From assembly GCA_054661495.1 (NCBI GenBank), contig BAAFSQ010000123.1, positions 1 through 28,466 of the forward strand: 28,466 nt of DNA. The letters are read 5' to 3'. A program made the position numbers and the translations under genes. This document shows, in pieces, positions 86 to 28,300 of the stretch. The notes beneath the pieces were generated by a model, which saw nothing but the letters and a program-made list of their open reading frames with translations, was not told the DNA's origin and did not search any database. The DNA comes from Zygophlyctis sp. KS116. Taxonomy: Eukaryota; Fungi; Chytridiomycota. The number at the start of each line of letters is the position of its first letter. The first letter of the stretch is position 1.

Positions 86-832
86 TTATCCAGAAATATA
101 AAATGTATTGGGAATCAGACGATCATAGCGAAATTGGAAATTTGTCCGAAATCCAATTGCTATAATATTGAGAACTCCTGTAGAAACAGCCCAAAGAAAA
201 CTATTTAAATCGCCTGATTCATTAGCATATATAAATCCAAGAATAAATAAATAGAAAGAAATCAAATGAATAATAAGAAATGATGCGAGGTATTTTATCG
301 TTTCAGGAATGACCTCGAATTGTAGGAGAGAAATGTACTCGTAAATATTGATGACCAACAGCAAATTAGAAAATGCAAATGAAAGATATGTATAGATAGT
401 TTTTTTCCTGAAAATAATTGACACATTCTATGATGAATATCTGAATACGCTTACATTCGATGATTTCTTCTTGGATTCCGGTTTGACTGCAGGAGGCGCA
501 TCGGCTGGCTCGGACCTGGTTATTTTGCTTTCGATGCGCTTTGCCAATACTTTTTCGAGTATCTCTCTCTCTTGATCAGCCAAGGAAATGGCAGATGATC
601 TTCTAACAGAAAAATTGGACACACCCGTGGAGTTTTTCATGACTGCTTTCTCGTCATCCTCTTCTATAGTATTCTTATCTTCAGATGTAATGGTTCTTCT
701 TCTTATACGCATCTGACTCATTCGCCGGCGCACATTTGCGTCAGCTATTTCAAGAATCTCATCATCAAGCTCGTCGGCAAGTTCTTCTAAATGATCAGTG
801 CTATATGCGCTAACTTCAGACTTCAGATTCAT
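86..832 (-). CDS. Hypothetical membrane protein (charged, probably disordered N-terminus; about 3 TM helices at the C-terminus)
   Basis: ORFs 428..832 and 86..424 join in frame through a 27-nt GTAAGC..TAG intron (428-454). The ATG at 832 lies inside the last codons of the upstream ABC gene. No family recognised; both ends are uncertain. Confidence 0.6.
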
Positions 833-3039
833 TTATAGTATATAACTTGTAATAAAAGCCTTTCTTTGCGAGGAGCTCCTCGTGTGTGCCTAGAATTAAA
901 CGCGAAAACTAATACCCATTTCCACAATATTCCCCGTTGATCTTTTCTGCTTATCCTTGGAGTCCAGAACCACTATCAAATCCGCCGACTTAATAGTACT
1001 AAGTCGATGGGCAATAATTAATGTGGTTCTATTTTTCATGAGTCGATGTAGGGCCTCTTGAACAATTCTTTCAGATTCATCTTTGACGTTATTCTACTCA
1101 TAAACTTACTATCAAGTGCACTCGTAGCTTCATCTAAAATAATAATCTTTGGATTTTTGAGAATAGCCCCTAATCTTAACTTAAAGTACTTACTGGCAAT
1201 CGCTACTCTCTGTTTCTGTCCTCCTGAAAGGGTGACCCCTCTTTCTCCGATAGTAGTTTCATATTTTTCTGGAAAATCGTCTATAAATGAGGCTGCGTTT
1301 GCTAATTGAGCTGCTTCTAAAACTTCCTCGGAAGACGCTCCAGGTCTACCGTATATAATGTTATCATAAATTGTTCCTGCAAACAAGACAGGCTCTTGAT
1401 CAATATAACCAATATTCTGCCGCAGCCAACTAAACAAATTAAATATAATACATACTTTGAATCTAATCTTCGCAAATCTTCACCATCAACTAAAACTAAA
1501 CCAGAATCAGGATCGTAAAAGCGTTCAATCAGTTGACCTATTGTACTTTTACCGCTACCAGATGGGCCACACAATGCGATTATACTCCCATTAGGAATAG
1601 TTACTTTTTATAAATGTATTAAATGGTATCTTACAAGAAATATTATGAAGTACTGGATCATTTGGACGAGTTGGGTATTTGAAACATACATTCTTCAATT
1701 CAATAGATCCTTTCAGATCACTCAAATAAAGTCCTCCCTGACTGGTGATTTTGGGCTGTAGTTCCATAAATTCAAAAATACGTGAACCAGATCCCAAAGC
1801 TTTCACAACTTGACCAAACATAACTCCTATAGTTGCTTCCAATTAACATAATTTAGATATTACCAAAAGATTTTTGAACATTTTGAGTAGCCACCCTTTA
1901 CATCAGACAAATTTCAAATAATTACATATATGCCATGAGCTGTCCAGAAGACATTTTTTCTTGAATAACTTGCTGCCCACCAAAATAAAGCATAAGAAGC
2001 ATCAAAAGCCCAACTGATGAATTTGTAAAACCTTGAAAGGCCCCGATATGAAATCCTAAAAACATGTTTAATTCAGCATTTCTCTGAGATGCATCCAAAT
2101 ATTTTTGAAGTTGAAAGTCCTCTGCGGAAAATGACTTGACTGTTAAAATATTTGCAACCGACTCATTTGCTATACCATTTGCAACCGACTCTGCATCCTT
2201 TGCCATTTTTGAAATACTTCGAAGATATTGACCGTATGAATTCATTCCAAGATAAAGTACTGGCATAGATGATAGCAAAATACCTGTAAGATACGGTGAT
2301 AGGTACATCAATGTAGCACAAGTTCCAATTATTTGCGTACTACTCTTAAGTCCTTGTGTAATAACAAGTTTGAAAGTATGCTTAAATTCAGAAATATCCA
2401 TTGTTAGTCGAGACACCACTTCCCCATTCATTCTTTGATCAAAAAATGCCATATCCTGATGTAAAATTGAGAAAAACAAATCTTTTTTCAATTTAAGAGC
2501 CAATCTTTCCCCTAATTGACCTACAAGATATATATCAATCCAAGTCAAAAGTCCTTGGAACGAAAACAAGCCCAATAATCGCAATCCAACTGATCTTATC
2601 GCGATCAAATCCAAACTAGACTGTGAAGCCATTTGTTGAATAAGGGAAGCAAATCGGCCCATCACTGTAGGAATAAATACATTTATGACGGCCGTCCCAA
2701 AAGACACAATAATTATCTAGTTTTTTAAAAAACTTGCAATACCGTTCCAAAAAGAAACCAATCTGATCTTATATACTTCCATAACCTTTTTAAAACCTGA
2801 CTATGAGAAACCTGTGTTTCTGTCTGTTTATCTTGCGGCTTTAGAATCTCTTTTTGTCCAACATGGACTTTTGCGACTTTAAAATCTATTGGATCAAGCT
2901 GAATTGATGGGTTTTCACATAATATACTAGAGTATGTTAAATATATTGATCCGCCCATTCCTAAACAAAGCGGCATCCATCTTGATCTAACCCAAGAATG
3001 CTGTTTTGGCCATTTATTGAACAAGACTCTAAATCTCAT
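816..3039 (-). CDS. ABCB8: Mitochondrial half-size ABC transporter, ABCB8-like (ABCB8/ABCB10/MDL family)
   Basis: Eight introns (2717-2742, 1896-1925, 1836-1863, 1604-1634, 1430-1455, 1170-1193, 1081-1109, 890-915) restore the TMD motif [24 protein letters not shown] (ABCB8-type), Walker [10 protein letters not shown], signature [14 protein letters not shown], Walker B/D-loop [11 protein letters not shown]-loop IAHRLSTI and GTHEELL. Arg-rich N-terminal presequence-like segment. Stop TGA at 816-818. Confidence 0.9.
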
Positions 3040-3069
3040 TACAAAAACTTATCGTAACCTAATGATTTA

Positions 3070-3545
3070 TTATAAATGATAAGATTCCGGTGAATATTCA
3101 CAATGTACAAACATATTTTCATATCTTACATCTGATCCATTTTGAAGATCTATACTAATTAAAAGAATAAATTACCATTAATTGTAATCTTTTGATATTT
3201 ATTCTCTGCCTTTGGAGTACAATAAGAAGATACAGGTGATGCTCTCCCTTTACGTTTTTTTCTTGGAGCATCAACACAACTCTCACTATTCCCACTGCGA
3301 ACACACCGACCACAAGGCCGTGAATCATCGCATTTTTTACAAGCCTTTTTACAATGAATGCAAGCTATTTTGACTAGAGATCTTTTAGGACGATATTTTA
3401 TCTCTTTTGATTCATATTCACCAATAGTCTGACAAGCGACTGATCGCTTCATAGAATTATCATCGAGGGATGTAATTTGAAAAACATAGTCATGATTAGA
3501 ATACATTCCTTCTAGATTCATAATCTCTGCTGCAAAGTCTTGCAT
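3070..3545 (-). CDS. Small Zn(II)2Cys6 binuclear-cluster transcription factor (ERT1/AcuK/RDS2-like cluster)
   Basis: ACIHCKKACKKCDDSRPCGRCVRSGNSESC followed by RKKRK. A 26-nt intron at 3150-3175 extends the ORF to TAA at 3070-3072, which overlaps an AATAAA. The last exon is less certain because an alternative acceptor exists. Confidence 0.85.
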
Positions 3546-3826
3546 TTAATTTGAAAGAGGAGCTTGTAATTAATTCATGATATTAAATCTGCGCAGCTTA
3601 TGAAAACACGCAATTTTTTTTGAAATTTTTGTAAAATATGCGCCTATTGTGACTTTAAATTGGGCAATTTTCAATTCTATCCAAAAGTTGAATTTCTAAA
3701 AAGAAAAAAGATGCTGTTTTGGAAAAATTATAACTTTATGGGATCCACTTACTTTAACGCTGGAAAAAGTTCTTTATGAACATCTTTATCTTCGATTCGT
3801 AATGAATCCGGACCTGCCCCATAAAT

Positions 3827-3980
3827 TAGGCTGATACTAGGTCTAAAATAGGTCGATCCTAGGTCTAAAATAGGATGATACTAGGTCTAAAATAGGTCGA
3901 TCCTAGGTCTAAAATAGGTCGATAATAGGATGATACTAGGTCTAAAATAGGTCGATCCTAGGTCTAAAATAGGTCGATAA
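3827..3980. repeat. Minisatellite: 14 units of 11 bp (TAGG+7 nt) with 22/44/55-bp higher-order structure
   Basis: TAGG recurs exactly every 11 bp from 3827 to 3970. Unit types are TAGGTCTAAAA, TAGGTCGATCC, TAGGATGATAC and TAGGTCGATAA. 3871-3925 is identical to 3926-3980. Confidence 0.97.
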
Positions 3981-4167
3981 AGTTGAAATGTGACTTTTTA
4001 ATTCTATTTTTGGATGTTCTATTATTAGCTACAGATAAGGATCTATTTTTAGAAAGTTATTTTTAACAAAATAAAAAAAAAGTAGTAACTTCAACTGATA
4101 ATAGGATGAACCCTGAACGATTCTAACCCAAAACTGAGCTAGGACAAGGCCGAGAGTTCAAAAAAAA

Positions 4168-7100
4168 ATGCAAACAGCCCAAGGCCGAGCCAGGGAAACA
4201 GCCCCAAACTTGGTAAAATGTAGGGACCCCACATGTAAATGTGTCTTTAAGACTGCAAGAGGTGAGCGTAATCACAGTTCGAAGTACCACGCTCACCTTA
4301 TTAAACATGTCGGTAGACCAAATATTGCGGTAAATAGAATTTATTTAATATTTTTAGAGTCTCAATCTCAATTTGGAAGGTCCCTTAGGAGAAAATTCAT
4401 CTGAAAGTCTTCTTGATCTTGGTGATCTGGATATTTCTGGCCTTGAAATCTCTGAGGGCCCTCTGATTTCTGTAATGATTTTAAAATGCTTAAACTAGGC
4501 AAATTTAGAACGGATAAATGAATTAGAAGCATCAGAAGAGGGTCTAAAGTTTGCTAATGACGATTTACAAAATGCATTAAATGTGGAACAAAAGTAATTA
4601 TGATCTAAACTTAAATTAGAAAAGCTGATGATTACGAGAAATTATGTGATTCGCAGGCAATGCAATTATTGATGCAATCAGAGATAATAAGGGTCTCAAA
4701 AAGTAAATTGGATCAACAAAATGATAATTTTGAGCAAAAGATGGATGCTGTGAAGATGGATGCTGAAAGAAGGATTTTTGAAACTCAAAAGGCTATGCGT
4801 ATAGAGGTACTGGATAAAAGTATTTAAAAAATTAGCTAGATGAAGCAAGAAAGGATTTTGGTATACAGATGGAGGAATTGATATCACAAAGAGATCATAT
4901 GGAAAATCAACTAATGATGGAAATGAATCACGCTAAAAGAAGAGTAAAACATTCTATTTATAAATCAAAAGATGGCTTCTGAATTGGAATCTTTGAAAGA
5001 ACTTCAAAATACACAGCAGTCCAAGGAAATCGATTGGCAGATGAGATTAAATTATATGGAATCTGAGCTTAATACTATAATTGATGATGATAAAGAAACA
5101 ATATCAAATCTAGAACTCAACGTTTGCAATTTATATCAAAATATTAAAGAGTAAGGATTTTTTAACTAAATGGTTAGTCTAAACAGTAATATAGACATGA
5201 TTAATCATGATCTGAATGAAGCAAGATCTGTCGTACAGTCTAAAGATGATGAAATCGATCGGTTGCAGACTTTATCAATGGATTTAACGAATAAGTTGGA
5301 AATAACCAAACAAAAGCTTAGTAGTCTAAACAAGAAACTAGAGGAAGATGATATGACTATTAATCTTGCAAACCAGAATATCTCTACTCTTCGAAATGAC
5401 GTATCTGCGCTGAAAAGGTAAATAATACATTATTCTTATTCTAGTGAAAATGCTAAACTTGAAGAGTCAACCAACAATTTAAAAAGGGCAAAGAGCGATC
5501 TAGAAAACAAGATATTTCTTCAAAGTACTTTATTTTGTACAGTAATATTATAGAGGAAGATTTCCTGAGTCTTCACTCAACTTATGAGGCTTCAAAACTG
5601 CAATGTAAAATGGTAAAGTTTACAGAGATAATTATAGGATATGGAAAAGGCACTTTCCTTATTAAAAAATGAACTTGTCTCAGATTATGAAGGAGTTATT
5701 GATGGAATTAGAAAACAAGCCAAAATTGAGCTCATTAATGCAATTTCAGAAAAATGGGATCAAATAAAGGAGATTCAAAACTCGATGAAAACACAGGAAT
5801 TAAATTTTAACAAAAGTCTAGCGTCTCAAAATGAAGTGTCCATTGCTGAAAAAACTGATTTACAGGTACTTTTGACACATAGTGTTCATAAATTAGTCTA
5901 AATTAAACTCAAGTATCGAAACTGCGAAATCTCTTCAAAGAGACTTTAATGCAGCAAACGTAGAAATCAATCAAAAGCTACTTGAAATTTCTAAACTAAA
6001 ATCCGTGATTGATGTACTTTTCTGTCTGGAATTAATAATTAGAGTTTAAATGATCAAATATTTGTTTTGGAAGTCGATAAATCTCACTGGTTCCTTCAAA
6101 TAGAAGCCACAGATAAACGGGCTAGAGCAGAAGAAGTAGGAAAGTCTGCAATTGAAAAGGAAAAACTGGAAGCGGCACTGTAAGTTACTTTAGGATTCTA
6201 AAAGTAAGGAGAGCAGATCATGCGGAGCATATGGATATATTAAGGACAAGTCTTCAGCAGCAATCTGATCAAATGCTGCAGGAACAGGAATCCCGCATGC
6301 AAAGGTCACATAACTCATCAATTCAAGCACTCAATAAGAAATATCATGAGGAATTGAAGATTGAAAGAGACAAAGTGTTTACTTACGAAAAGCTTTTGAA
6401 TGATATTAAAAGAAAACTTAAAGATCAAGACGAATATAGATCTGGAAATATTGCAGAGCCTACAAAAGTTCAACTGAAATCTGTAAGAGTAAATCTGTAA
6501 TTATAGGGGAAAAGAAACCTTTTATCGGATTCAGATGTAGAATATGCAGTTAATCCCTTACCGGATTATCTGGTATGTACAACATTCAGCATTGTCGAAA
6601 ATGGTCTCGGGTCTCAGTTATACCGTAAGATCACCAAATGGGACAACATACCTCTGTCTCTTTCAAATGGATCGGACCCGGACAATACGGATAGAGGAAA
6701 GGGGAAGAAAGGTGTTAACAAATTGGAGACGAACTTTTTAAACAATATACGAACAAAAATGGTCTCTATTTTAAAATCAATTGGGTTCCGCCGGATATTT
6801 ACCTTCGGTGGAAATAATTCAAAATTTTTTATACCTTGGATCAGGCCACAGCTTTCAGATTCTACTTTTTATTATACAGACTGTTGCCATATGTGCCAGT
6901 TCTACAATCCTTTGTACAAACCTAATCAAGACGCTCATGAGAAGTTGGACAAATGGCTATCTATAATTTCTTCTGCAAAGATTTCATTTGGACAAGAAAT
7001 GTTTAGACAAAAGGGGCCTGGATATGAGAAACAACTTTTAATCCGACGCCAAGCACTTTTTCACGCGAGCCAGATGGGTGGAAGAGTATCTGTGGAACGT

Positions 7101-7256
7101 CTTGCCATGAAAAGAAACGCTGGAAAAGAAGTTGCACTCCACAAATGCAGTGGCTGTGGGAAATTGGAAGAGAAACAATTAGAGAAACCTGGAAGGCATC
7201 GACCAAGAATTGAAAATGGAAAGAATCCTACATGTGGATACTGGATATTAAAATAA
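4168..7256 (+). CDS. Hypothetical protein: N-terminal C2H2-like zinc finger, long coiled coil, Cys/His-containing C-terminal domain
   Basis: Thirteen introns (4330-4357, 4472-4498, 4594-4619, 4807-4835, 4944-4971, 5151-5177, 5418-5444, 5525-5553, 5613-5637, 5866-5896, 6014-6042, 6180-6208, 6483-6506) join the + strand fragments in one frame. Motif C-x4-C-x3-F-x8-H-x4-H, then an E/K/L/Q-rich heptad region, then CCHMC and CSGC near the C-terminus. Confidence 0.75.
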
Positions 7257-7393
7257 ACAGTGGATCTTTTATGTGTTTTAATAAAATATTTCTAATTTCT
7301 ATGTCTTGGGTTGAATCTTTTTGAAATTAAAGAATTTTATGATGCTTCACTACAGCTAAAACTCTTCCTACATTTTTATCAAAAAACTGGTCC

Positions 7394-7401
7394 AAAAAAA
7401 A
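7394..7401 (-). terminator. RNA polymerase III oligo-T terminator of tRNA-Phe
   Basis: Run of 8 T on the minus strand, one base after the tRNA discriminator. Confidence 0.85.
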
Positions 7402-7402
7402 T

Positions 7403-7475
7403 TGCCGAAACTCGGATTCGAACCAAGGACCTGAGCATCTTCAGTGCTACGCTCTCCCAACTGAGCTATTTCGGC
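7403..7475 (-). tRNA. trnF-GAA: tRNA-Phe (GAA), intronless
   Basis: Reverse complement GCCGAAATAGCTCAGTTGGGAGAGCGTAGCACTGAAGATGCTCAGGTCCTTGGTTCGAATCCGAGTTTCGGCA folds as a 73-nt cloverleaf with anticodon loop CTGAAGA, A and B boxes, and no encoded CCA. Confidence 0.97.
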
Positions 7476-8195: not shown

Positions 8196-8240
8196 TGAAT
8201 AATGTAAAAGACTGCATGTTTTTTTTTAGATTTTTGATAA

Positions 8241-9257
8241 TTACAACTTAATCTCTCTACTAAATCCACAAAAGTCCAAATATTTCTTTTTCTACCTTTA
8301 AGAAACTTAAATTACCAATTCTTCAATTTGAATTTCTAATTCCAAAGTCTTTAATTTCTGCCAACCTGAATGTTTCCAACATTTCCCTACTTTTTGACAA
8401 ATCTTTTCCTTGTAATCTTGATTATCAAGCCTTGTAATATCTTGTAATTCAAGATTTTCTAAATTTTTATCAATCTTTACAATGTCAATCCTTTCTTCTA
8501 AAATATTTAAATCTCCTTGAATTATAGAATAATCAAACCCACAAACCATTTCATTTGTTGGCTTATCTAGATTAATATAATGTACATTATCAACAATCTG
8601 ATCAATCATCAACAATTTTTCTTCTGATTTCCTTAAATCTTGTTTGAGTGCATTCCTAGAGTCTAAAAGAAACTCCAATTCATTTTCTAATTCATCATAA
8701 TTAAAAGGATCTTGTAAATTTTGAAATTTAATATTTGAAATTGTTTCAAAAGATTTAAAACATTTAGTTCTTGAATCAGACTCTAGTATTTTTTCTACAA
8801 TTCCCCTGTAAACTATTTTACCACAGTCTTGTGAACAATATTTACCAGATTTTGACGAGAAATTAAGTCTAGCATACTCTTGACAACCATTACATTTTTC
8901 CAAGAGTATAATACTCTTACCAAAAGTAATACAAGTAGAACATGCCCTATTTCTTGAGAGATTTAGATTATACCATGTATGTATTCCTTTTGCAGTATTT
9001 TCGTCCATATCATGACAAATCCCATGAAACCATTCTGAGCAATAGTCACAACAAATATGAAATTCATCTGCAGTCTGCTGTAAACAAGAGCAATTAATAT
9101 CAGACTCCTTGACTGGAGAGTACGATTTAGATGATGATACAAGTTTCCGTTTCTTGAGCGGCCAATGAGTCTCTTTTGTATTGTCTGTTATGACACTACT
9201 GACACTACTCATGTTATTACTCATGGGAGAATGTGTCTCTACAGGAAAAGATTCCAT
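8241..9257 (-). CDS. SPP1: COMPASS PHD-finger subunit, Spp1/Cfp1(CXXC1)-like
   Basis: PHD CSC..ICCDYCSEWFHGIC..WACSTC is restored by removing the in-frame 27-nt intron 8947-8973. Also KYCSQDCG and C-terminal ICQKVGKCWKHSGWQKL, typical of Spp1/Cfp1. A second intron at 8292-8315 has an ambiguous acceptor. Start placed at ATG 9257; other Mets are possible. Confidence 0.8.
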
Positions 9258-9267
9258 TTTAATTTTT

Positions 9268-10471
9268 ATGCTAAAGTGGACAATTCCAGTCATTCTCATA
9301 CTATGGTATCCCAGGATATACAGGAAAATCATTAATTGGATTATAAATTCACCAGTCTTGTACTATTGGCAAAAAACATTATCTACAACTCATTCTAGTT
9401 TAGGAAAACTTAATATTTACCATTCTAAATCTTTGGGAATTAGTATTACTCCTGTACCTTGTGGTGCAGATAATTATGCTTACTTGGTAATTGATTTAAA
9501 GAATAGTATTCTAGATTTTTTAAAATTGTAGAAGTTGCAGTTGCAATAGATCCTGTAGATCCAAAAAGACTACTAAATGCATTATATGAAATTGATTCTC
9601 AAATTGAATTAACTCATGTTTTAATAACTCATAAACATTGGGATCATGCTGGTGGAAATAGAGATTTAGTAAAGAAATTTCCAGGATTGGTTATAGTTGG
9701 AAGTAGTCTAGATTTTCCTGAAAATGGTCTCTTTAAGAACTTTTATTGTGTTAATAAGAGGGTAGTGGATAAAGAGAATGTAATTGTAAATGGAATTTTT
9801 AGAAAAATTAAATTTATAGGTTGGAAGATTGGTATTCAAGGTTCTTTATACTCCTTGTCATACTATGGGAAGTGTAATGTATCTCTTGGAAATTGATAAA
9901 ATTCAGTCTGAATTTAAGGAATTTGAAATTTTAAAAGATTTTACAAGAGATGGGTTAGATGTAGACTCTAGTAGTTTATTTACTGGAGATACGATATTTA
10001 CAGGAGGAATTGGTATTTTTAAGGATTTTTACGATAGGAAAGTTTTTTGAAGGAGATGCAAGTGATATGCATTTTGTGATTCAAAGATTGCTTTTAGATT
10101 TGGATTATAATACGCTGATTTGGCCAGGGCATGAGTATACTCTAGAAAATTTAGAATTTGCAATTGGATTAGAATCTAATAATTCTGCTTTAAAGGTACG
10201 ATATCAACAAGCTATAGAGACAAGAGTACAAGGATTATGTACAGTTCCTTCAACTTGGAAATATGAACTCATGACAAATCCTTTTTTAAGGATAGACTAT
10301 AGGACAAGAGATGAGGAATTATGGATTAATATTAAGAAGAATTTAAAAGATTTTAAATATCTAGTTAAATCTGTTGGATCAAGTTTTGAAAAAACTAAAG
10401 AAATTCAAGAAATAGTAATGTTGGATTGTTTAAGATCTCTTAAAGATAAATGGAAGAGTAAAAAAGAATAA
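9268..10471 (+). CDS. Hydroxyacylglutathione hydrolase (glyoxalase II)-family metallo-beta-lactamase-fold protein, PNKD/HAGHL-like, with hydrophobic N-terminal extension
   Basis: Introns 9506-9531, 9786-9819 and 10013-10037 restore DNYAYLVID, THKHWDHAGGN, TPCHT, LFTGDTIFTGGIGKFFEG, WPGHEYT and ELMTNPFLR. Confidence 0.9.
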
Positions 10472-10485
10472 TTTTAATGCTATTA

Positions 10486-11394
10486 TTAAATACCATTCCA
10501 TGTCCTTGTTTTATCTGAAATCACCACCATATCATATAATTCTCCTTCATCTTTTGCCAATCTTTCCAAGAGAGCTGCTGATAATGATTTTTTTAGTTTT
10601 GATAATACAGATGCCTTGATTGAAGTCTGTACTGATTCTGGTAAAGTTCTTACTAATGGAGTAAGCGTAAACACTACTCGAAGAGGAACTAGATCTGAAA
10701 TAAATGCAGAAGATGATTTTGGATCTAACGGAGTTATAGTTACTCTTGTTGTTTTTGATCTTAAATCTTTAATATTGTTTGATGGTGACTTTGGTCTTTT
10801 AAAAGCAGGTGAAGTAGGAATCGACCAATCCATACTTTTGAGTTCCTGTAATATTGATGATACATCCTTGTCAATCGAATCAATCAATCCTCTTGTAGAT
10901 ACTGTTGTGTGATTGAAATTGTGTTCTTTTTTATTAGATATTGAATTGTTTGATTTAATTGAAGAACTGTACTCGTCCATTGATCTTGCTCCATGAATAG
11001 ATTCATTTGATGATGATGCTCTTATACTACGAAATGCATTCGGAGGTCTAGATGGCATACTTAGAGGTCTTCCACTTAAAGCCAATGATTTCTGAATTGG
11101 AATTTCCAATATTTTCCTTAAATGAATAGAATCATTTGTCCAAAGCCTGTTGATTCTCTTGACTTCTCCAACGCCAACTCTATACATTACACAAATTCCT
11201 TCCAATGTATCATCCGGTTGAATTAAATGATGAATTATTTGATCTGAATCATTCTGGGATTTTACATCAAACGAATGCCTGTTCTTGATGCTCATTGCTG
11301 GAGATGAAGGACCTTTACTATTCTTATAGTCGAATGAATCAGTGAGATCTATCGGAGAAATCAGTGGATGGCTAGTCGTAGATGTTATTGACAT
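10486..11394 (-). CDS. Intracellular LysM-domain protein
   Basis: HLIQPDDTLEGICVMYRVGVGEVKRINRLWTNDSIHLRKILEIP is one LysM repeat. Ser-rich flanks, no signal peptide, intronless. Confidence 0.85.
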   Translation of the reverse strand: MSITSTTSHPLISPIDLTDSFDYKNSKGPSSPAMSIKNRHSFDVKSQNDSDQIIHHLIQPDDTLEGICVMYRVGVGEVKRINRLWTNDSIHLRKILEIPIQKSLALSGRPLSMPSRPPNAFRSIRASSSNESIHGARSMDEYSSSIKSNNSISNKKEHNFNHTTVSTRGLIDSIDKDVSSILQELKSMDWSIPTSPAFKRPKSPSNNIKDLRSKTTRVTITPLDPKSSSAFISDLVPLRVVFTLTPLVRTLPESVQTSIKASVLSKLKKSLSAALLERLAKDEGELYDMVVISDKTRTWNGI

Positions 11395-11426
11395 TCTGAA
11401 ACGAAAAAAAGGAAAATTTACGAGTT

Positions 11427-12465
11427 TTAAATCGAATCGAATATTTCCATCAAGGATTTAGATATAATCCGAATATTATAATCAATCAATCCTTGTTTGT
11501 CTAGTGCATCTTCCCTAATTAATGCAACTATTACCAAATGTGAATTTACAGGTCTCAAGTATAATTGTCCATTATTAAGGCTAATAATTGACTCATCATT
11601 CTTGATATCTGTTGAAAAAGTTGCTGTATTCCCATATATACTTGACATATCTAGTACCACATCTATTACATCTGAACATAATTCATAAGTTCCTATATCT
11701 ACAGGAGATGAATCAGTTGCGATATAAATCTTTGACATTGCATCAAATAAAAAAACTTTTTCAATTCCAGAATTCTAACCTTTAATTGATTCAACTTACA
11801 GAACAGAGTATATTAAGTAGAGATTCAAGTGTAGGAAGTTGTGGAATTAGTTTTTGTACAACTTTTGAAAATGCTTCAAAAATTGAATGATCATAGATTG
11901 AAGTTAGATAAAAACTTAGATAAACTGATTCTAGTCCTGCATCCATAAATTCATCTGTTAATCTTTGAAGTATATCTCGTTGAGTATCTATTAATTTAGA
12001 AAAAATAGAATAGTACCAATTTTATAATCATCAGACAGTCCATCTACCTTGTGAATAAAAACTTCAAAATTAATTTTTGGATTGATATAGTATGCACGCG
12101 ATACAGTTAAGAATAAGCGATGTAACGCTTCAAGATAATCTTCTTGAACATCAATCACAAATATTAGAGCGCCACATTTCCTAAATAAATCATCAAAATC
12201 CATGACGGTATCAGAAAAATTCCATAAATTAGGAAAATCTTCCACTCGTAAGTCTACAAACGATCTGACATCAGACTAGAGAAATACCTAATTTCATCCT
12301 TTTCCTTTGAGTTTGATTCTAAAAATAATGTTTCATTTGGTGACATTTTCTGAAAAACCACTTTAGCAATTGATGATTTCCCTCCTCTACAGTTAGATTG
12401 GGAAAATACCTCTTTAGGCCCATCAGTGCCAGTAACGGTTTTGAGGAAAAAGTATTATATTTCAT
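11427..12465 (-). CDS. GTR2: Rag GTPase Gtr2/RagC-D
   Basis: Introns 12387-12409, 12265-12287, 11988-12016 and 11775-11799 give [74 protein letters not shown] and [12 protein letters not shown], all collinear with RagC. Confidence 0.96.
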
Positions 12466-12467
12466 TT

Positions 12468-16580: not shown

Positions 16581-17986
16581 TTAGTTTTCGCTGAAAGAAT
16601 ATACGGCAACATATCCAGCTTCATAACAAGGTACAAAAACTTCAGAAAATCCATCACCTAGTTAATTAGCTAAAACAGAGCAAAAATATTACCATTAACA
16701 TCTCCTACTGCGATTCCACCGACGGTTGAATGGCAATTATGAAATCCAACCGCATCATAATCCCAATTATCAGGTGATTCTGATTTAGGGATTAGCATAT
16801 ATGCCTTTTGAGAAGCATCGCCAGCCAAAGCAAGAAATGGCTTCATACTTTTATTATCTACATTTGGATAAAAAGCAACAGGAAGTCCAGGAGCAGCGGC
16901 TTTAGTTCCTTTTTGCAGTACATGAAAATCTCCAGTGGCAAGAACATGACGTGTCCATGATGTAGTCGTAGAAAATCCAGGCTGATACTGATACGCAAGC
17001 ATTGATCCCTTGATCTTTTCCTTCTCTTCTTGGTGGTTTGTAATAACTATCTCAGGCTATTTTCAATATAAGTTAATCACACCTTTCCATCATTATTAAT
17101 GTCAAAAACAGATAGTCCCAAAACATGTCCTGCATTTCTAATTATTAATTAAAAAGTGATGATTACCTTTCAACCACGAAAGTTCGCAATGCAGATCTCT
17201 CTGAAAATCGACCCAACGGATCAACAGTCTTGATGATTGAAATTCGGCTACTCCAATATTCAACGGTAACAATCTCAGGAACACCATCCAAATCTAAATC
17301 AACTATAGAAAATAATGTATCACAATTGGCACTTAATACTGTTTCTATCCAAGGACCTGTAGGATTCTTACGATCTTTAGGTACAAGATAAGTCAAATTT
17401 CCATGACCCCGTCCATTCATGGGTGACACTGTGGCTCGACACGTTAGAATATCTAATTCCCCATCATTATCGACATCATGAAATACAAGTTGATGATAAA
17501 AATAGTTCCTCGCCATAAAAATCTTGATCATCCGTCCCTGTTCACCAGTTGAGGATCTAATAAACTTAAAATCGATTTGATTACTCACCTTGCAGAGAAC
17601 CAAATTCCACCATTTGTTTTAGTTGGAACTAAAAATCCACCAGCCACTACGACACCATCCATTCCAAAAACTGATTTAGGAGCTTGTAAAACATAATTAG
17701 GCCAAGTTACATCACCGGCAATCTTTTTGAGTCTTGGAGTTGTACTTCCTAGTGCAGCAATTCCAGCATCTTGATAAAACGCAACGCCGTCCGGATTGTG
17801 AAAGGGATCAAAACCAAATGATGTCACAAATAATGATGGGTCTTTCTCATCTTCAAAATGGATCAAATCGCAATATGCTGCTTTTGGAACAGTTATATTA
17901 GATATCATTTTAAAGCTTCTAGGAAGAGCTGCAAATCCATTACAAGATCCACTCAATGCTAATACTGACAAGATAAATTGCAACAT
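16581..17986 (-). CDS. Secreted FG-GAP/VCBS-like beta-propeller protein with DxDxDG Ca-binding loops
   Basis: Signal peptide MLQFILSVLALSGSCNG. Repeats DVDNDGELDIL, DLDLDGVPEIV, DINNDGKPEIV and DVNGDGFSEVF. Introns 17557-17588, 17138-17166, 17057-17082, 16658-16692. Confidence 0.85.
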
Positions 17987-18157: not shown

Positions 18158-19396
18158 CTAGTTTTGATCAAAATTCTCCAAGAGAAAGCCTCCCAAAATA
18201 GCAGTGGCAATAAGAACTGGGAGAGCATCTGGACTGTCGGTCTGGCATTCTGGACATTCAAGGCTATTCTTTCCAATAGCCTGATGAACAAGAGTTGGGA
18301 TGCATTCTCCACAAAATCTGTGCTTGCATGGTTCTACTTCAAGACTGGGAAAAGGTTGATTGCATCGACTACAATTTGGCAGATTTTGTCTTTGTCGAGT
18401 TCCTCGCTTTCTAAAAGTGGTATCAATTATTTCATGAACAAGGGAAGACGATGAATATGATCCTTGTCCAGACGGCAATGCTCTTTCAGCTTTTAAAGCT
18501 TCATTAGCCTTTCTAAAGTTTCATTTTCAAAATATTTACCTCATTGATGCTCTTCGCTGATTCATTCCACATTTATTACAGAGATAATTTGCATAATTTT
18601 CACGGTCTCGTCGCCACTTACCTGCAGACTTGTATGTCAGACAATTAGCACATCGGCGGCGCGTATCAGAGGAAACTTCAGCGACTGTTGTGCTTCCAGA
18701 ATTACCATCCTGACAGTTAATATTAGTAAAACATACAACATCATATCCAGGAACATAATCACAAGGAGAATAGGATTCGCCATTATGTTGATGACTGGAA
18801 GCTCTTGGAGTTTTCGAATGGTCAAATTGAGAGCTGTCATGATTAGCTTTTAAAATGATTTACTTTTGGCGCTGATTAAGACGGCCTCGTCGTTGATTCA
18901 TTCCGCAATTGTTACAAAGCCATTTGTTTGGTTCTTCTAAATCGGATCTCCAGTAGCGAGAATATGTGGTCTCACAGCGATTGCATTTTCTTGACGCCAA
19001 TCTTTTTTGCACTTCCGGCATTGGTAATGGCTGATCTATCGATGCAGTATGCCAACCACGATAGGCCAGAGGACCAGTCATTCTGGTCTTTATAAGTCCA
19101 GTAGATTTTAATTTGGTAACTGCATTTCGTATTCCAGATGCGGTACTTTAGGTCAATGAATAAATAAATTACTGATTTAATTGTTCGGCTAATTGCTCAT
19201 TAGTGAACCATTGGTCAGAATGTGTCATGAGAAACATTTTTAATTCTTCAGGGACATTTTTGGGTTTTTGTATGATGATAATATCTTGGGGTTGCAAAAC
19301 CGCGTCTCTTTCATGTTTTAAACTAGATTCGGACAAGTAGGAAAGAGCGGCTGGTGAACAAGGTATAATATCTGGGGGGAAAGCTGCTTGATTCAT
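18158..19396 (-). CDS. Multi-domain regulator: winged-HTH-like domain, two GATA-type zinc fingers, C3HC4 RING
   Basis: Introns 19146-19172, 18834-18863, 18710-18736 (in-frame, probable) and 18513-18539 join the ORF fragments. Motifs CNRC-x19-CNNC, CANC-x20-CNKC and CSRC..CKHRFCGEC..CPEC. Confidence 0.8.
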
Positions 19397-19571: not shown

Positions 19572-21470
19572 CTAAAACTTTAAGAATATGACTCCTCCCA
19601 CTCCTAAAATCCAGCCTAAAGCTCCAAATCCTGTACATACATAAAATGCAATCTTTTGCGTCTCCAAAATTGATTTATAATATTTAACAATACGGTCAAC
19701 CTCCTTTTGAAAAATAAAGCTATTCCCCGATGGAGATTGTCCATCATTAGAAGAATCCGGACCCAGTTTTATAGCCATCCGTTTTGCTAGCACTGATAAA
19801 TCGCCCATGGCTTCATTATCAATAGCTCCTACAGAAGAATTCACTCGAGGAAATTCCAAGTGCATAGAATTCTTTAAACTTTCTCCGATTCCAACAATGG
19901 ATTCGAAAGTAGATCCAATCATACAGTGAACAAACTTGGAAATAGCATCTTTCAAAGGAGGAACTGTATTAAATGCCTTTGAGATCAAGTCATTAAATCC
20001 TGTAGTAAAAGTATTTGTTGTCTGATTGACTACTTGAACTGTGTCATTTATCCATCCGAAAAGAATCTGATTAGTCTGAGTTTCAATCTCTTGAATCCTA
20101 CTATTCGCTTGCAGTACATATGGATCAACTGTTTCTGACACCATTTTTTGAACGGCACGATTTATCATTCCAGTTGTAGTTTGCAACTCGTTATTCACTG
20201 AATTTAAGGCTGACAAACTTGCACGATCTAATATAAGGATCTGTATATTAATCAAAATCAATCCTAATATTCCTATTCCTAGAAAGAGCAAAGACGGATT
20301 ATAAATTGTATAATCCAAAAACCATCGCAGCCGCATTCTCGAGCCATGTTTTCGAATCTTACTGGCGACTTTACTGTAGATTAAGAATGCAACCGGATTT
20401 CTAACAGAATATAAAATATCACCCAACTCTATGGCTCCAAAAGATCCTTTAGTCAATGTGTTTAATCTTTCTTGACTTCTTTCAAACCATTTGTGCTCCA
20501 GATATATCAGATATGCGTTCGCAATTATCATTAAAATACCTAAAACCACCAAAGTCCAAATCATTACTGTGAAACCATAACGTATACCATCTGCCAGCTT
20601 TGGAATCCAACCAGTAGGAACATCCTTGCAAAATGTTGCGTCGGCGGCTTTAGCAGGAACAGGTAAATTTAGATCCGAGAAATAAACCTTTTTCATTGTA
20701 CTATTCAAAGAATCAGATAATAACTTGAATGGTGTTGATATCAGCGCACTGATTTCATTTTGAGCATCTTCCAAGTCAGGCACAGTATTTTTTAAATTTT
20801 GCAGAGTTGATTGAAAATCGGTAGGAAGAGCGAAATTAAGTTTTCCTGCGACTTCTGGAAGTGAAAAGGTTGGTATATTGACATTACTCCCTGAATTACC
20901 AAACATATTCGTGACTGCGTTTGCTGCACTTTGTACACCGCCATTGATTGATCTTATCTGAGAATTGATCCCATCAAGACCGGCATTTAGTGAGTTAGCG
21001 ATACTAGCCATTTGCGTTTGAATCTAAATTTTAATATCTAATTATCATACAAATGTAGTGATCTCTTGAGAATATAGTGAAATAGCACCCAACGTTCCAG
21101 CTAAAATTGAATCTAAAATACAAACGATTAGCTTTTGGTATCTTTTTAATAAGATCACAAGCAGCTGATTCAACAATTTAATAAACATCAATAGCATTTT
21201 ACCCATATGATTTACTACTGATGAGATTGAGGAAGCGATCGCAGCATTTGTCTGTGCAGCAACATAATGAGGTGTGGATGCCAAAGAAGTAGCAGCAACT
21301 TCCAATCCATGACAAGATGATGCCAAGCGGAACTGAGTTTCTTCTATTTTAGAATCAATAGTTTGCCTCATTGTCCATAACGACATTATCGAAAGGATTA
21401 CAATCAAGAGATATGTAGACAAGTAAGATCTAGAGAGCTTTGCCTTTAATCCAAGATATGAAGATTGCAT
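19572..21470 (-). CDS. PRM1: Plasma-membrane fusion protein Prm1
   Basis: N-terminus YLGLKAKLSRSYL followed by a TM helix, SSCHGLEVAATSLASTPHY, multiple TM helices with two large ectoloops, LFGWINDT, CMIGS and LEFPRV. A 27-nt intron at 21024-21050. Start placed at ATG 21470. Confidence 0.88.
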
Positions 21471-21561
21471 TGTATTCAAACTGAAAACGGCCGCACTCAA
21501 CGCACTCAATGACGCAGAGCAGTCAATCAGATCCCATGTTTGGACTGGGAATGAATAATCT

Positions 21562-23097
21562 TTATTGTTCCTTCTTTTCAGATGAAGTATCAGCATCTGC
21601 AATTTCATCCTTTTTCTTAACATAATCATCAGGTATCATCATTTCCAACAACTCACCACCACCAACCAAGAAGAAGAGAGATGAAATTAGCAATATGATA
21701 TGACCGTGATAATAAGTCGTCGAATAGAATTTCATTGAATAATCGAGTCGACGAAGTAAAAATGCAGGCATATTATAAGCTAATAGAGAATGAGTACAAA
21801 TCCATCCAGCAATATCATATAATATGCGAATTTTTTCAAATCTTGAAAGAAATAGTGGCCTGATATATTTTCTACAGTTTCTGCTAATATACGTAAGCCA
21901 AGCCATACCTAAAAATGTTAGATAGTATCCTGGATGATATCCATGCCAAAAAGCTGAAATTAGAAAAGTCACTAAAGTAGCAACAAAAGTAGAGCCTTTA
22001 GAATTTGGAGGATGAATTCTATTATACACTGAATGTCTAAGCCATTCAGCTGTATTTGCATTCCAACCAGCCAGCAAAACTCGAAGATTTGGTGCCAATT
22101 CAATTTGTCTTATATTAACATTTTGCAATCGGTTCCATTTATTTCTTCCATTATAGTCTGTCCCACTGTATCCAAGACCAGCAACGAGACCTGCTCCTTC
22201 TGCTAATTTCCATCCTCTAAAAAGTTATAAAACAAATTAATACGCATAAAACGAACATCTCTGAACAAACCCAGTAAAATATATAAACCAAAATTTACTA
22301 AATAATGATCGATCCATATATTCTGGTTTAAGAGTGATTAGATAATTATACTGACTATCAAAATAAAAATTTATAGCAAAAGGAATCAATGCTTTTACAT
22401 TTAAAGATTTCCAAAATTACCTGTAAACGCAATAAAAATCCCAGGAACCACTCCAGATGGAGCATTTTCAAATCTTTCCTTACTCTTTAACACTTAAATT
22501 TACCTTTTTATAAATATAATTATAATAATCCTTGAATTGAAAGGATGGTCCAATCAAGAAACAAGGAAAAAAGAAAATATAACCCAAAAAATCCAATAAT
22601 GAAGGGAATTCCACCAATCTATATCTCTTTTGGTACATAGTTTGATCCTTTGATGATTAAAATTAGTAACGAACCTTTTCATCTATTTGACCATCGAATA
22701 CAGCCCAAGCAAAAGAGCTCAGTTTTAATACCATTACCATTATTACAATAGTTTGATCTATTCTTCCTGTCTGACCTTTAACTATTTGCGTATACAAATG
22801 ACTAGATTTAGTTCAATATTCATACTTGACGGATAGAACGCCCATGCTAGAGATAATAATTGCAATAGGTGCTTTGGAAGAACCTTTAAAAATATAGCAG
22901 ATCCCATAGCAAATCAAACATAATGAAATAATTTGTAAAAATCCAGTAAAGTTGAATAAATAAGAAAATGAAGACGCAGAGACTATTATAGAAAATATAT
23001 TCTTTGCTTTATTCGGCAGATAATTAAACAATATCGCAAGAGGATAATTTAAGAGAAGAAAAGCTCCAATTCCAAAAACTTCAGGATTTTGTTTCAT
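21562..23097 (-). CDS. ALE1: MBOAT lysophospholipid acyltransferase (Ale1/LPCAT3-MBOAT1/2 family)
   Basis: Introns 22802-22825, 22648-22674, 22479-22503, 22392-22420, 22217-22243. Motifs MVLKLSSFAWAVFDG, FFPCFLIGP, GWNANTAEWLRHSVYNR and SAFWHGYHPGYYLTF. Confidence 0.92.
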
Positions 23098-23148
23098 TTC
23101 AAAAAAACCTAAATTCAGTTAAGTTCAGATTTAATTGTAGTATGTTAA

Positions 23149-23330
23149 TGATTGCTGACTGTTGATTACTGACTGTTGATTATTGACTGTTGATTGCTGA
23201 CTGTTGATTGCTGACTGTTGATTATTGACTGTTGATTACTGACTGTTGACTGTTGACGGATGATCTGATGGTTGATTACTGAATGTTGACTGTTGACGGA
23301 TGATCTGATGGTTGATTGCTGATTACTGAT
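23149..23330. repeat. Heptamer-based minisatellite: 7 x 14 bp (TGATTRYTGACTGT) plus 2 x 40 bp
   Basis: 14-bp units run from 23149 to 23246. 23231-23270 and 23271-23310 differ at one base. The array overlaps the 3' end of the methyltransferase CDS. Confidence 0.95.
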
Positions 23331-24820
23331 CTAATAAGAAATGATTCATTCTCTCCTACCATAGCTTGACTTTGAATTTTAGTTTTTCTAACAGCAACCA
23401 ATGCAACATTTCTAGGAGAAATCTCGTGACGGAAAACATTCTTGAGTTCAACCTCAAAATCACGGTTTTCAGACACGTACTTGTAGCGGTCATAAAGTAA
23501 TAGTGATTCCATGACAGGTCCATAAAATCTACGCATTGTAGAAACAAATGCTATTCTTCCAAGCAATATAGGATATGAGCAAGATTCTTCAAATTCTATT
23601 AATTGGGGTTTTAGAATGTATAGATCAGGTCTAGCAGATAAGGCATAATTTATAAATCCATTTGAAAAAGCATCCTTTTTAAGAGTTCCAATAGATAAAC
23701 GAGGTTGTGAAATATCAGAGTTTTGATTTCTTGATTCTAAAAAACCTTCTAAAAGACAACGATATGCAAATGCTTTCCATATATCAGTTATTCTTTTATC
23801 TGAAAATCCAACCATTGTTTGACATGCACAATTTAAAATTCTATAAGTAGGAATAAATAGATTTTGAGAATCTGTTTGATTATTAAAAGGATATTTGTCA
23901 TTAAATTCCATTGTATGAGATTTTATAGTGTTTGATAAAGGAAAGCCTTTCGGAGATAGCATTTGATAACAACATCCAATACTAATCACACAAGCTACCC
24001 ACGAACAATTAATAAAAGAGTTTAGAATAACTTGACTTGATAGATCTCCACAAGCATGTAAACAAGTTATCAAGATTTTAGAATTTCCTTTGCCAATCAA
24101 AGACTTTTGAAATTCAAGTCTATCGCCTACTTGAATCAAATCATATTCTGATAAAATATCAAAAAGGCTTTGAGAGTCTAATCTCTGAACGATGTGTGTA
24201 ATTTTTTGATGAAATTCTGGACAGCTAGTAAATCGTTTTTGAGAATGTCTAATTTGAGATTCATCACCATCAATAGCAAGAATAGGATAATATTTAGACA
24301 ATTCTACAGTTAAATAGCCAGAACCAGATCCCACATCTACAATACCTTGAACATCATACTGATTTGCATATTGTAGAACCATTTTTGAAAGTAATTCCAC
24401 TTCATGATACTTTTTTTTACCCATTTTCGAGATACAAAGTACATCATTTGTATACTGAAAGTTCCCAAAAATTTCCCTAGAAATAGTCAGCATTTTGGCC
24501 TCTACAAATTTAAATTAACTAGACATACCATTAATAAATCCAATCATACTTTTTGGCCAATAGTTATCTCCAAGAATATCCTCATCTCTGAATGATTGGA
24601 TGGATGGATCAGATAGTTTCATCAATGCTAAAAGCCTTGCAAAGAATGCATCCATGTCCCTGGATATCTCATTATCCACAAAGCTAATCCATTCCTCTGG
24701 GCAAGTCCGTTTAAGCATGCATTGGATTTCAGGTTGAGCAAAAGTAAATATATGAGGCTCAATAATATTATTCCACTTTATGATCCATTCAACCATCTCT
24801 TTGCCTTGTTTAGCTTGCAT
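23276..24820 (-). CDS. METTL25: SAM-dependent methyltransferase, METTL25/RRNAD1 (Methyltransf_32) family
   Basis: MGKKKYHEVELL, IVDVGSGSGYL, LHACGDLS, GCCYQML, ESLLLYDR and ISPRNVALVA. A 27-nt intron at 24502-24528. First ATG is at 24820 (24841 is GTG). Confidence 0.88.
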
Positions 24821-24881
24821 CGCCGTGAGCCAAAGTGCCACTTATTCGCAAATAAACAAGATCCTAAACAGGTAAACAGTA

Positions 24882-25385: not shown

Positions 25386-25388
25386 AAG

Positions 25389-28300
25389 TTACAATTCACA
25401 TGCAATATGAACATTTTTATCTATCCATACAGAGTCTGATTCCATGCTTGAAATGTAGAATGAGGTTACAAACAAATCCATGTATGGAGATATGAAAATC
25501 CCAGGCTTTGGTTTGAATATATATAATGGGCATTCAAACTTTGTGCCGTTTCTCCCGACTTTTGGAGTTGCCTTGAGATTTTTTATCTTGGTTTCTTGTC
25601 TCAAAATAGGCTGGATCCATACCTTTTTATGAGTTTATAAAAAAAACTTACACACGGTATCTCTATTGAAGATTCAGAAAGTTTGCCCGGTCGTAAGATT
25701 CCTTTTGAAAAATCCCATGATGCTCCAACCAAATTTAGCCCGGATACGTATGCTCCCTTTTCCGGTAAAAGAGATGGTTTTGAACTAAGGATTGAAACTT
25801 CAAGATCAATTAATTCAATTGAATCTTTAGAGTAAGTACAGTAATCAAGACGAATTGCTTCCAAAAACCCTTTTGGACAAAACATTTTGGTGATATCATA
25901 GATTATAAGGCAGCCCTTATTAACCAGATTTGGATTTTGTCGAACAGAGTACCAATTATTTACAAATTGTAGCCGTGAAGGAAAGTCTTTAATGAATTCA
26001 GCAAGTTTTAAGCTGGTAAGATAGCACTTTCCAGATTTTAACCATTCTGATGGAATTTGATTGGTCTGCATCTCCCATATAGTTTTTTCATAATGCTTAA
26101 ATCTGGGAATAGATCCGCTAGCCATGCTTATGAGACGATCCAAAGACCTGATGACTAAAGCAGTCAATGTCTGATAGCTTTCTATATTATATCGAAGGAC
26201 ATGCTCCATAAATTTACTAGCCTTTGAATTATACAATTGTAGACGCTTCGAAGTGACTTTAAAAGGTCTCTTACTAATATTAATTAAACTTTTGAATTGA
26301 AAGCAACCGGTGCTTTGCATCTTTATATCATTTAAAAAGCATTCACAAAGCTCTTTGAATTCCTTTAGAGGCGATACGATGGATTTAAAAGGCCCCTCTA
26401 ATTCCAAATTCTGATATAACCGGAAACAACTTAAAATTTCCTCTGAGAAAGCAGTATTCTTAGAATAACGGGCATTTATATCAAGACCATAGATTGCCGG
26501 AGAAATTAAATCATCCTCTGGTAGCGCTTTTATCTGTTCAACGCATTTTTTCATATCTGATTTTGCATATTTTTCATATATTGTCTTGAATGAAGGTAAA
26601 TCATTATGGGTTGAATCAAACATTGCGATATTGTGAAATCTCGTAAACAGTGAGCAAATTGTTCGTATGTCCCAAGTGTCAAGAGATTGAGAATTTAGAA
26701 TATAATTGTTTGTCAAATGCTGAAATTTATGCAGCAAATCTGTCTGATCAATCAAATCATCCCCGAAATCTAAACAAACTTGTCTGAAAAGCTTGAAGGC
26801 TCTGAGAATTTCGTCATCAGTTATATCAATCGGATTATTCAATCTGACGATTTGAAAGTTTTGCGAGCTTTTAAAAAAGGAAACCGAGAGCAAAAAGCTG
26901 AATAAGACTCGGCGGTAAGTCATTTGCATCTTTGGGCTAGCAGGTATGTTATTTTCAACTGATATGTAAGATGATTCATATATATATGAGCGCAAAGATC
27001 GATTCCTGGGAATGTACACTTTAATTGAGCGCTGAGATATGGAAATCGGCATATTTTCAAAGGGCTTTGAGATGAGCCAAAGCCTAAAGTTTTGATTTCT
27101 TTCTGACAACGTTTTCATTAAATAAGAAAAATGAAAATCCAAATAATACAAAGCATTTGAGTTACGATCACAGCCAGTAAGAATAAGCCACCTCCCTCGC
27201 CGAATTGAGTCCAACAGGACATTGGCCAAATCATTGATAACATCCTTATCATCTAAATTTAGAAACGAGGTCGCATTGGTCATTAACTTTTCCGATGCCA
27301 AACGCTTGATCATTTTCACGACATTATCCTGACCTTCATTGATAATCCATATGAAAGCGCTGATACTTGAAAATCTAAAATTGCTTTGTATAGGGTCCAC
27401 TGGGTCTATGGTGGCACTTGGAGATATAACTGAAGTGAATAAATTCTGCACTGCTAAATTTAAAGAGTCTGGACGCAGTACATAAATTATAATCAGCTTA
27501 TCAAGTGCTGAAAGATTGGAAAATTCAGTCGGATGAGTTAATTTCAAAGGATTTTCAGCGTTTGATAGATTTTCCCAAGCTGAATCTACCTTCTTGTTGA
27601 ATGTTCTCGTAAAATAAGAAGCACTTTCTACTATATGTTTGAATTTCTGCCATCTGCATAGTCGTTCCCATTTGTCAATTAAAGTTCCTGAAATCCAATC
27701 AGGCTTTTCAATTTGATTAGAAAAATCCGATTCTTGCCTGCTCGATTTTCCGCCTAAAAACTTCACGTATTCGTCCAAATTTCTAACTGGACTCTCCAAT
27801 ATGTACTTGCATGCAATCAGCGCTAATTCTAGAGACCATACAGATAACTCTGACATATTTAATCCTGGCCGAACATAATTAAAAACAGCGACCAGCAGTT
27901 GGGAAATGCAAGATCTTAATTGGTGTCCTTCGAAAGAAGCTAACTGACGACCAGATAATGCACATAAGTCTAAAAACCACATGAACCCAATATAATTCTT
28001 CAGACTTAACAGCGTCAATTTATCAACTGAGAAAAATATTTCAGCCATCGGTTTTGACAATTTTTTTATCATGGATGTTTTTTCCGCCTTTTTTTGCTCC
28101 TGTCCATCTGAAATTTCCATTTTCCCTATAATAGACATCGCCAACTCATCATTTTCTATTATGTTTCGATACAAATCACCGTGGCTCAGGTCTCCTTTTT
28201 GGATCATTAAAACAAATTCAGCACTTCGATTAGCCAGAAATTCGTATCTATTCCGAAGACTAGCAGCTTCAGTATCAATGCTTTTAAAATCATCTTTTTC

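Follow-up and report, generated by a model that had tools for sequence, protein, structure and literature searches.

The 28,466-nucleotide (nt) contig BAAFSQ010000123.1 (assembly GCA_054661495.1) of the chytrid Zygophlyctis sp. KS116, hereafter the window, carries genes that are interrupted by very short introns. The curated annotation comprises 53 introns with GT-AG ends placed in 15 genes, 52 of them with 23-35 nt and one with 57 nt. These figures, advanced in a preliminary description of the DNA together with the minus-strand examples at 12387-12409 (23 nt) and 1170-1193 (24 nt), were recovered by independent gene modelling, and both examples lie at the coordinates given. The segments can be taken as real spliceosomal introns, a reading that the sequence comparisons support well. 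In the following, the contigs compared with the window are labelled with L-numbers (e.g., L007, L011, L012, L046) and the contigs of the present genome (G000) with C-numbers.

The gene at 86-721 contains an intron at 428-454 (27 nt, minus strand), whose position is kept in L011 (27 nt) and L012 (28 nt). It is followed by an ABCB-type half transporter (816-2976, minus strand; Pfam ABC_membrane) with eight introns, placed at 2717-2742 (26 nt), 1896-1925 (30 nt), 1836-1863 (28 nt, AAG end), 1604-1634 (31 nt), 1430-1455 (26 nt), 1170-1193 (24 nt), 1081-1109 (29 nt) and 890-915 (26 nt). All eight occur in L011, five of the positions lack the intron in L008, L012 or L014, where the coding runs on without a gap, and the introns common to the relatives differ in length by non-multiples of three. 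A Zn2Cys6 gene (3070-3545, minus strand; Pfam Zn_clus) has one intron (3150-3175, 26 nt), conserved in L011. In the coiled-coil gene fragment at 4233-7256 (plus strand), 14 introns with lengths of 24-31 nt were called, all located from 4235 to 6506. Eleven of these, from 4472-4498 to 6180-6208, fall within the stretch that is a duplicate of contig C146 sequence, and the paralogue on that contig keeps both GT and AG at all 11, with the indels that are not multiples of three (non-3n) confined to the introns. The other three (4235-4259, 4330-4357 and 6483-6506) have no comparative support. The intron of a PHD-finger gene (8241-9257, minus strand; intron 8292-8315) has 24 nt here, 25 nt in L011 and 27 nt in L007. 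In the glyoxalase II (HAGH)-like gene (9268-10471, plus strand; Pfam HAGH_C) the introns are located at 9506-9531 (26 nt), 9786-9819 (34 nt) and 10013-10037 (25 nt); the first is shorter in L012 (23 nt) and longer in L007 (61 nt) than the 26 nt found here, and the second is absent in both relatives.

The RagC/Gtr2 GTPase gene (11427-12465, minus strand) has four introns at 12387-12409 (23 nt), 12265-12287 (23 nt), 11988-12016 (29 nt) and 11775-11799 (25 nt), and its exon matches RagC structures (E 8e-29). Three of these positions are shared with L007, L012 and L050, whereas 11988-12016 is absent there with gapless coding. Gene packing is extreme at 11394-12470: the stop of the neighbouring gene and the RagC start are separated by 2 nt, RagC and a LysM gene by 32 nt, and the gene order is conserved in L007, L012 and L050. 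The neighbouring gene (12468-13622, minus strand) is intronless and encodes a three-RRM protein of the Nam8/RBP45/47 type, assigned to Nam8 by similarity only, which might possibly be a U1-associated factor.

In the genes that follow, introns are recognised by frame restoration, which in the case of histone H1 (14001-14856, minus strand) yields an H1-like protein. The H1 introns are those at 14704-14760 (57 nt), 14617-14643 (27 nt) and 14340-14364 (25 nt). The first is the sole long intron of the window and has a consensus donor and two CTAAC motifs. An 8-bp stem could cover its donor, yet its folding is no better than that of shuffled sequences (z 0.22), and no Rfam match was found for it. 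Two introns, at 15413-15440 (28 nt) and 15553-15578 (26 nt), interrupt the gene at 15213-16427 (plus strand). They are followed on the minus strand by an FG-GAP-repeat protein (16581-17986), with introns at 17557-17588 (32 nt), 17138-17166 (29 nt), 17057-17082 (26 nt) and 16658-16692 (35 nt), and by a GATA/RING finger gene (18158-19228), with introns at 19146-19172 (27 nt), 18834-18863 (30 nt), 18710-18736 (27 nt) and 18513-18539 (27 nt). A membrane protein gene (19572-21470), presumably Prm1-like, has an intron of 27 nt at 21024-21050 (minus strand). The MBOAT acyltransferase (21562-23097, minus strand; Pfam MBOAT) is restored to 467 amino acids by the removal of introns at 22802-22825 (24 nt), 22648-22674 (27 nt), 22479-22503 (25 nt), 22392-22420 (29 nt) and 22217-22243 (27 nt). 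The last two introns of the window are located at 24502-24528 (27 nt, minus strand), in a methyltransferase gene (23276-24820), and at 25623-25651 (29 nt, minus strand), the latter being the last intron of a dynein heavy chain gene (Pfam Dynein_C) that extends beyond the window. A 14-nt tandem array of 12.7 copies (23149-23322) overlaps the end of the methyltransferase open reading frame (ORF) and the upstream region of the MBOAT gene.

The introns were called with a gene finder written for this analysis, whose coding statistics came from training on long ORFs in a 254-kb sample of this genome. The genome-wide intron statistics refer to this self-trained finder and to these 254 kb, which represent about 2% of the genome. 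With a flat length prior (15-200 nt), the calls already peaked at 24-30 nt in iteration 0, and the same peak was obtained in a control run with the flat prior and no branch model. After self-training, 503 introns were called, with a median of 27 nt, 97% of the lengths within 22-35 nt and a density of 2.4 introns per kb of coding sequence. The intron-rich character that had been proposed for the genome is borne out. In the curation of the window, the three HAGH introns were added, a 37-nt call (1827-1863) was replaced by the 28-nt intron 1836-1863 on orthologue evidence, and a 197-nt call (10297-10493) was judged false and removed. All 19 curated gene models are free of internal stops. Distances of 23-30 nt from GTA to the first TAG occur 81 times in the window against 46.6 ± 8.0 in Markov simulations.

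Comparative support was obtained for 28 of the 53 window introns, and the other 25 rest on restoration of the reading frame alone. Syntenic relatives with 97%, 71-74% and 63-67% nucleotide identity have intron positions in common with the window and differ in the lengths. Seven window introns are cleanly absent in an orthologue, with coding continuous across the junction. Against the relatives with 72% identity, the alignment gap rate is 25-27% in introns and 4% in exons. Elsewhere in the genome, an ungapped actin protein requires introns of 27, 25 and 25 nt. Assembly errors are excluded because independent metagenomes carry the same DNA: positions 600-3744 are found in an independent metagenome contig with 0 substitutions. 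The introns 1836-1863, 1896-1925, 2717-2742, 9786-9819 and 11988-12016 are missing from relatives that are 71-74% identical. Recent intron gain or loss, in either direction, is accordingly ongoing in the clade. Introner elements are families of sequence-similar introns gained recently; by eye, the interiors of the present introns appear unrelated, and the positions are common with relatives.

Transcript-like evidence is available for Hsp90. The JGI contig L046, from a close relative, starts just 5′ of the Hsp90 start and stops just 3′ of its stop codon. It is 99% identical to the genomic contig L048 except for a single 25-nt GT..AG gap, and the present genome has a 27-nt Hsp90 intron at this site. 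Two further contigs from the sister clade (L047 and L049) are also joined there. The three contigs are transcript-like and carry no RNA label. A scan of metagenome contigs with the RagC exon returned one genomic relative and no transcript.

The anatomy of the introns was analysed on 495 introns of the 254-kb sample. They have 22% GC and a donor of the GTA(A/T) type, with GTA in 95% of the cases. The acceptors are TAG (363), AAG (98) and CAG (34), AAG (20%) outnumbering CAG (7%). As first noticed in the window, a branch-like motif sits a few nt from the AG and leaves no 3′ polypyrimidine tract (pyrimidine fraction of 0.48 at -8 to -4). A YTRA motif with its A at -13 to -6 occurs in 341 of the 495 introns against 154 expected; this A is enriched at -7 to -10 and falls below background at -6. 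In introns of 23-24 nt the branch-like A is found at -7 or -8 only. An A at -9/-10 is present in 15 of 294 cases when its position in the intron is 17 or lower and in 94 of 536 when it is 18 or higher (p 9e-8), and in 1 of 147 when it is 16 or lower. The branch-like A, as placed by the motif, has its floor at intron position 17-18 from the 5′ end. Stop-free introns with a length of 3n amount to 30 of 149, and the caller is biased against such introns, so that no conclusion on nonsense-mediated decay is drawn.

The donor and branch signals contribute about 7.1 and 6.5 bits, respectively. Exonic decoys, i.e., donor-branch-AG look-alikes, occur at 0.64-0.66 of the synonymous-shuffle expectation for spans of 24-39 nt and at 0.82-0.92 for 40-63 nt, the antisense strand being at about 1.0; the depletion is also seen in the frame-breaking classes. 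A short span thus probably contributes to intron recognition, the decoy signal being suggestive and not clean. Longer introns of 57, 68, 82 and 87 nt exist in the genome sample and tend to have consensus branch sites. From the preliminary description, which had proposed a length-measuring spliceosome, the contribution of the span to recognition is retained. A strict ruler, on the other hand, is excluded because introns of 57-87 nt occur, and is further contradicted by the HAGH intron, with 23, 26 and 61 nt in three species.

The splicing machinery was inventoried for seven components: U1, U2, U6, U2AF65, SF1, U1-70K and SF3A2. U1 is present in two copies with ACUUACCU intact, which is preceded by GC instead of AU. 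U2 has two full copies with an intact GUAGUA, and U6 keeps an intact ACAGAGA. The U6 gene (C436:156-268) has an atypical internal stem-loop sequence and a score of only 61 bits, the AGC being intact as well. U2AF65 is full-length, with the RS region, two RRMs and the UHM. The same is true for SF1, with the ULM, KH-QUA2 and zinc knuckles, and for U1-70K and SF3A2. No loss and no non-canonical motif was detected among the seven, and the parts list of a remodelled spliceosome put forward at the outset was consequently not encountered in them. As judged from their sequences, the introns belong to the U2-type (major) class: the donor complements the 5′ end of U1 and the branch motif would pair with the GUAGUA of U2. 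Neither the RTATCCTT donor nor the TCCTTAAC branch of the U12-type appears in the intron logos, the U11/U12 genes not having been searched.

The interpretation held here with good confidence is that these are ordinary U2-type introns of an uncultured freshwater chytrid, and that throughout its genome they would have become shorter until they nearly reached the lower limit accepted by its spliceosome. U1 on the donor and U2 on the branch motif would pair across the intron (intron definition). The minimum length of 23-24 nt would then arise because two floors add up to it, a lariat loop of 17-18 nt and a tail of 6 nt. Deletion bias or selection for compactness would drive the introns down to this floor. 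The weak signals (about 7 + 6.5 bits) would be topped up by a soft short-span preference of about 3-4 bits, and the rare longer introns would rely on donors and branch sites of greater strength. The duplex between U6 and the 5′ splice site and the upstream arm of the U2/branch helix, placed end to end, would take up roughly the 17-18 nt of such a loop. With both duplexes accommodated in this way, no new machinery would be needed, and it would be enough to lose those protein contacts that lie further upstream than the branch.

A structurally remodelled spliceosome, in which specific changes are required and length is actively measured, is a possible but less likely alternative. The changes might comprise truncated SF3b/SF3a contacts, altered branching factors, or a sequential instead of joint binding of U1 and U2. 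The narrow distribution, with 97% of the introns within 22-35 nt, and the depletion of decoys at 24-39 nt are in line with such a machine. Proteins that bind upstream of the branch would also find scant space in a lariat loop of 17-18 nt. Moreover, the branching-factor regions of Stentor are not conserved (PMC9505925). The existence of introns of 57-87 nt and of the 61-nt orthologue argues in the opposite direction, as do the seven full-length components with canonical motifs and the myxozoans, which retain U2, U2AF1 and U2AF2 with introns of 22-27 nt (PMC13644364). In a soft form, a remodelled length-measuring machine is compatible with a conventional spliceosome.

Several points weigh against the conventional U2-type interpretation. 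The sequencing-run search for this organism returned DNA runs only and no RNA, and the transcript evidence consists of one intron (Hsp90), in relatives and in contigs not labelled as RNA. The branch points were placed by motif position and not mapped. The decoys of 64-70 nt are likewise depleted (0.74), which weakens the span argument. Finally, a seven-component inventory leaves room for changes in Prp8, SF3B1, Isy1, Cwc25, Yju2 and the U1 peripheral proteins.

The assembly totals 12.73 Mb over 1175 contigs, and its DNA is encountered in metagenomes from freshwater. Its Hsp90 is 82-86% identical to those of named chytrids, and the dynein and SHIPPO-repeat genes fit a flagellate organism. The spliceosomal introns and the fungus-like genome initially proposed are supported, the genome being that of a chytrid. 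In the Hsp90 tree, the sequence and nine environmental ones make up a clade on a long stem, placed in a Chytridiomycota polytomy with moderate support (83/65) and outside a 100/98 clade of seven sampled Rhizophydiales genera. rRNA (5.8S) was not found in the genome search and Hsp90 is the only gene behind the placement. The Spizellomyces Hsp90 has an intron of 82 nt, and the 27-nt intron present here interrupts the gene between the same two codons, so that an old intron has shrunk.

It is improbable that the short state goes back to an ancestor shared with Globomyces and Gorgonomyces, the Rhizophydiales with short introns. All are chytrids, the backbone of the Hsp90 tree offers no resolution, and a branch-to-AG spacing of 7 is also found in Gorgonomyces. 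Against such ancestry, the sampled Rhizophydiales constitute the 100/98 clade without the present sequence, and a clade joining it with five genera of the Terramyces/Globomyces/Gorgonomyces group was rejected with Hsp90 (approximately unbiased test, p 0.0026). In addition, the Hsp90 intron of Polyrhizophydium, the only one used for this genus as exact lengths could not be parsed for most genes, has 403 nt, and the introns of Spizellomyces have 55-82 nt. Because the grouping is rejected, this gene suggests a separate origin of the short-intron state, and the tiny introns of this lineage probably arose independently.

The notion that the segments are not introns, and that they reflect errors of the assembly, lesions of pseudogenes or frameshifts that some other mechanism reads through, draws on the lack of RNA in the run search and on one window gene being a chimeric partial duplicate, and can practically be set aside: identical DNA is found in independent metagenomes, essential genes (actin, Hsp90, RagC, U2AF65 and SF1) all require the introns, GT and AG are preserved while the interiors take non-3n indels, and the segments are exactly absent in orthologues and in transcript-like contigs.

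The partial duplicate is the coiled-coil fragment, located in a 3.7-kb polymorphic insertion (3715-7395) directly after the 3′ end of a tRNA-Phe gene (7403-7475, minus strand). The insertion is missing from L011 and from other runs. It is a mosaic of a 91-95% partial copy of the 1049-amino-acid coiled-coil gene of C146, which we take to be FAM184-like, and of pieces matching C274 and C596, with tandem repeats of 22 nt at 3822-3980. Compared with the parent gene, the copy has two deletions (87 and 12 nt), and both preserve the frame. No transposase was seen in the insertion, and the C-terminal part of the coiled-coil gene had no match in Atlas or Pfam.

With a median below 30 nt (27 nt), 97% of the introns within 22-35 nt and 2.4 introns per kb of coding sequence, the genome joins the ultra-short-intron genomes. 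Ultra-short introns have been described in Paramecium, Stentor, microsporidia, dicyemids and myxozoans (PMC5014332, PMC9505925, PMC13644364), with about 25 nt in Paramecium, 22-27 nt in myxobolid myxozoans and 15-16 nt in Stentor. Paramecium, the myxozoans and Stentor share with the present genome the genome-wide ultra-short U2-type introns, a weak branch signal, the absence of a 3′ pyrimidine tract and the retention of small nuclear RNAs and U2AF, though they are unrelated lineages. Stentor has a fixed length and the branch A at 10-11, unlike the loop floor of 17-18 found here; in the present genome lengths vary between 23 and 35 nt, with a tail to 87 nt, and the branch A between -7 and -10. 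The microsporidian Encephalitozoon has introns of about 25 nt, but these are few, less than 20% spliced and served by a reduced spliceosome (PMC6349667). Here there are hundreds per 250 kb, essential genes included, and U1, U1-70K, U2AF65 and SF1 are present.

Among fungi, a median intron length down to 29 bp has been reported, with no species attributable to it (PMC8042348). Rozella allomycis has 2.5 introns per kb of coding sequence (PMC8476143) and short introns of about 30 nt in S23 (PMC6349667), but is an endoparasite from a different phylum (Cryptomycota). No chytrid is included in a 2026 list of the exceptions under 30 nt (PMC13644364), and a literature search for tiny introns in Chytridiomycota, which did not reach many subscription papers, found no description. 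Such introns are present in public annotations, the lengths being obtained as annotated gene span minus protein length. Globomyces pollinis-pini (Rhizophydiales, GCA_025399215.1) is a cultured, intron-dense chytrid with AT-rich GT-AG introns. In an 18-kb sample with 8 annotated genes, most of them have 26-36 nt, the median is about 30, and there are up to 12-13 introns per gene; it differs in the slightly longer mode and belongs to a different clade on Hsp90. Gorgonomyces haynaldii (Rhizophydiales, GCA_025526955.1), also cultured, has in JAHLJY010000007.1 seven neighbouring annotated genes with 19 or 38 nt of intron, which gives GT-AG introns of 19 nt whose positions 11-13 read T-x-A, position 13 (-7) being that of the branch-like A. 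Its introns differ from those of the window in the fixed length and lower density (about 1 per gene in the sample) and are more extreme. This Stentor-like fixed-length system in a cultured fungus, for which no paper was found, is arguably more striking than the window.

The novelty initially attributed to the window is thus largely gone, as similar or shorter length modes are carried by the Globomyces and Gorgonomyces annotations and introns of about 30 nt by Rozella (PMC6349667). The short introns of this genome are not unique among chytrids, where tiny introns are probably under-reported. Gene callers with a 40-nt minimum, or prokaryotic ones, fragment such genes, as is seen in called ORFs and in agreement with the mis-annotation foreseen, and therefore lake chytrid genomes are likely under-annotated. 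A tentative proposal, given somewhat less than even chances, is that chytrids miniaturised their introns repeatedly while remaining intron-rich, with their own loop floors (13 nt in Gorgonomyces, 17-18 nt here) and an unchanged 6-nt tail, the floors being set by identifiable, lineage-specific changes in the spliceosome surfaces that contact the intron. If true, this would be an unreported natural series within one fungal phylum, with some members culturable. To the known size class the window contributes a fungal case of apparently independent origin, the geometry of which can be measured (loop floor 17-18, tail 6). When it is considered alongside the cultured Globomyces (about 30 nt) and Gorgonomyces (19 nt) and Spizellomyces with its long introns, the old question of how short the distance from donor to branch can become is open to tests in related fungi, through comparative genomics and work on RNA.

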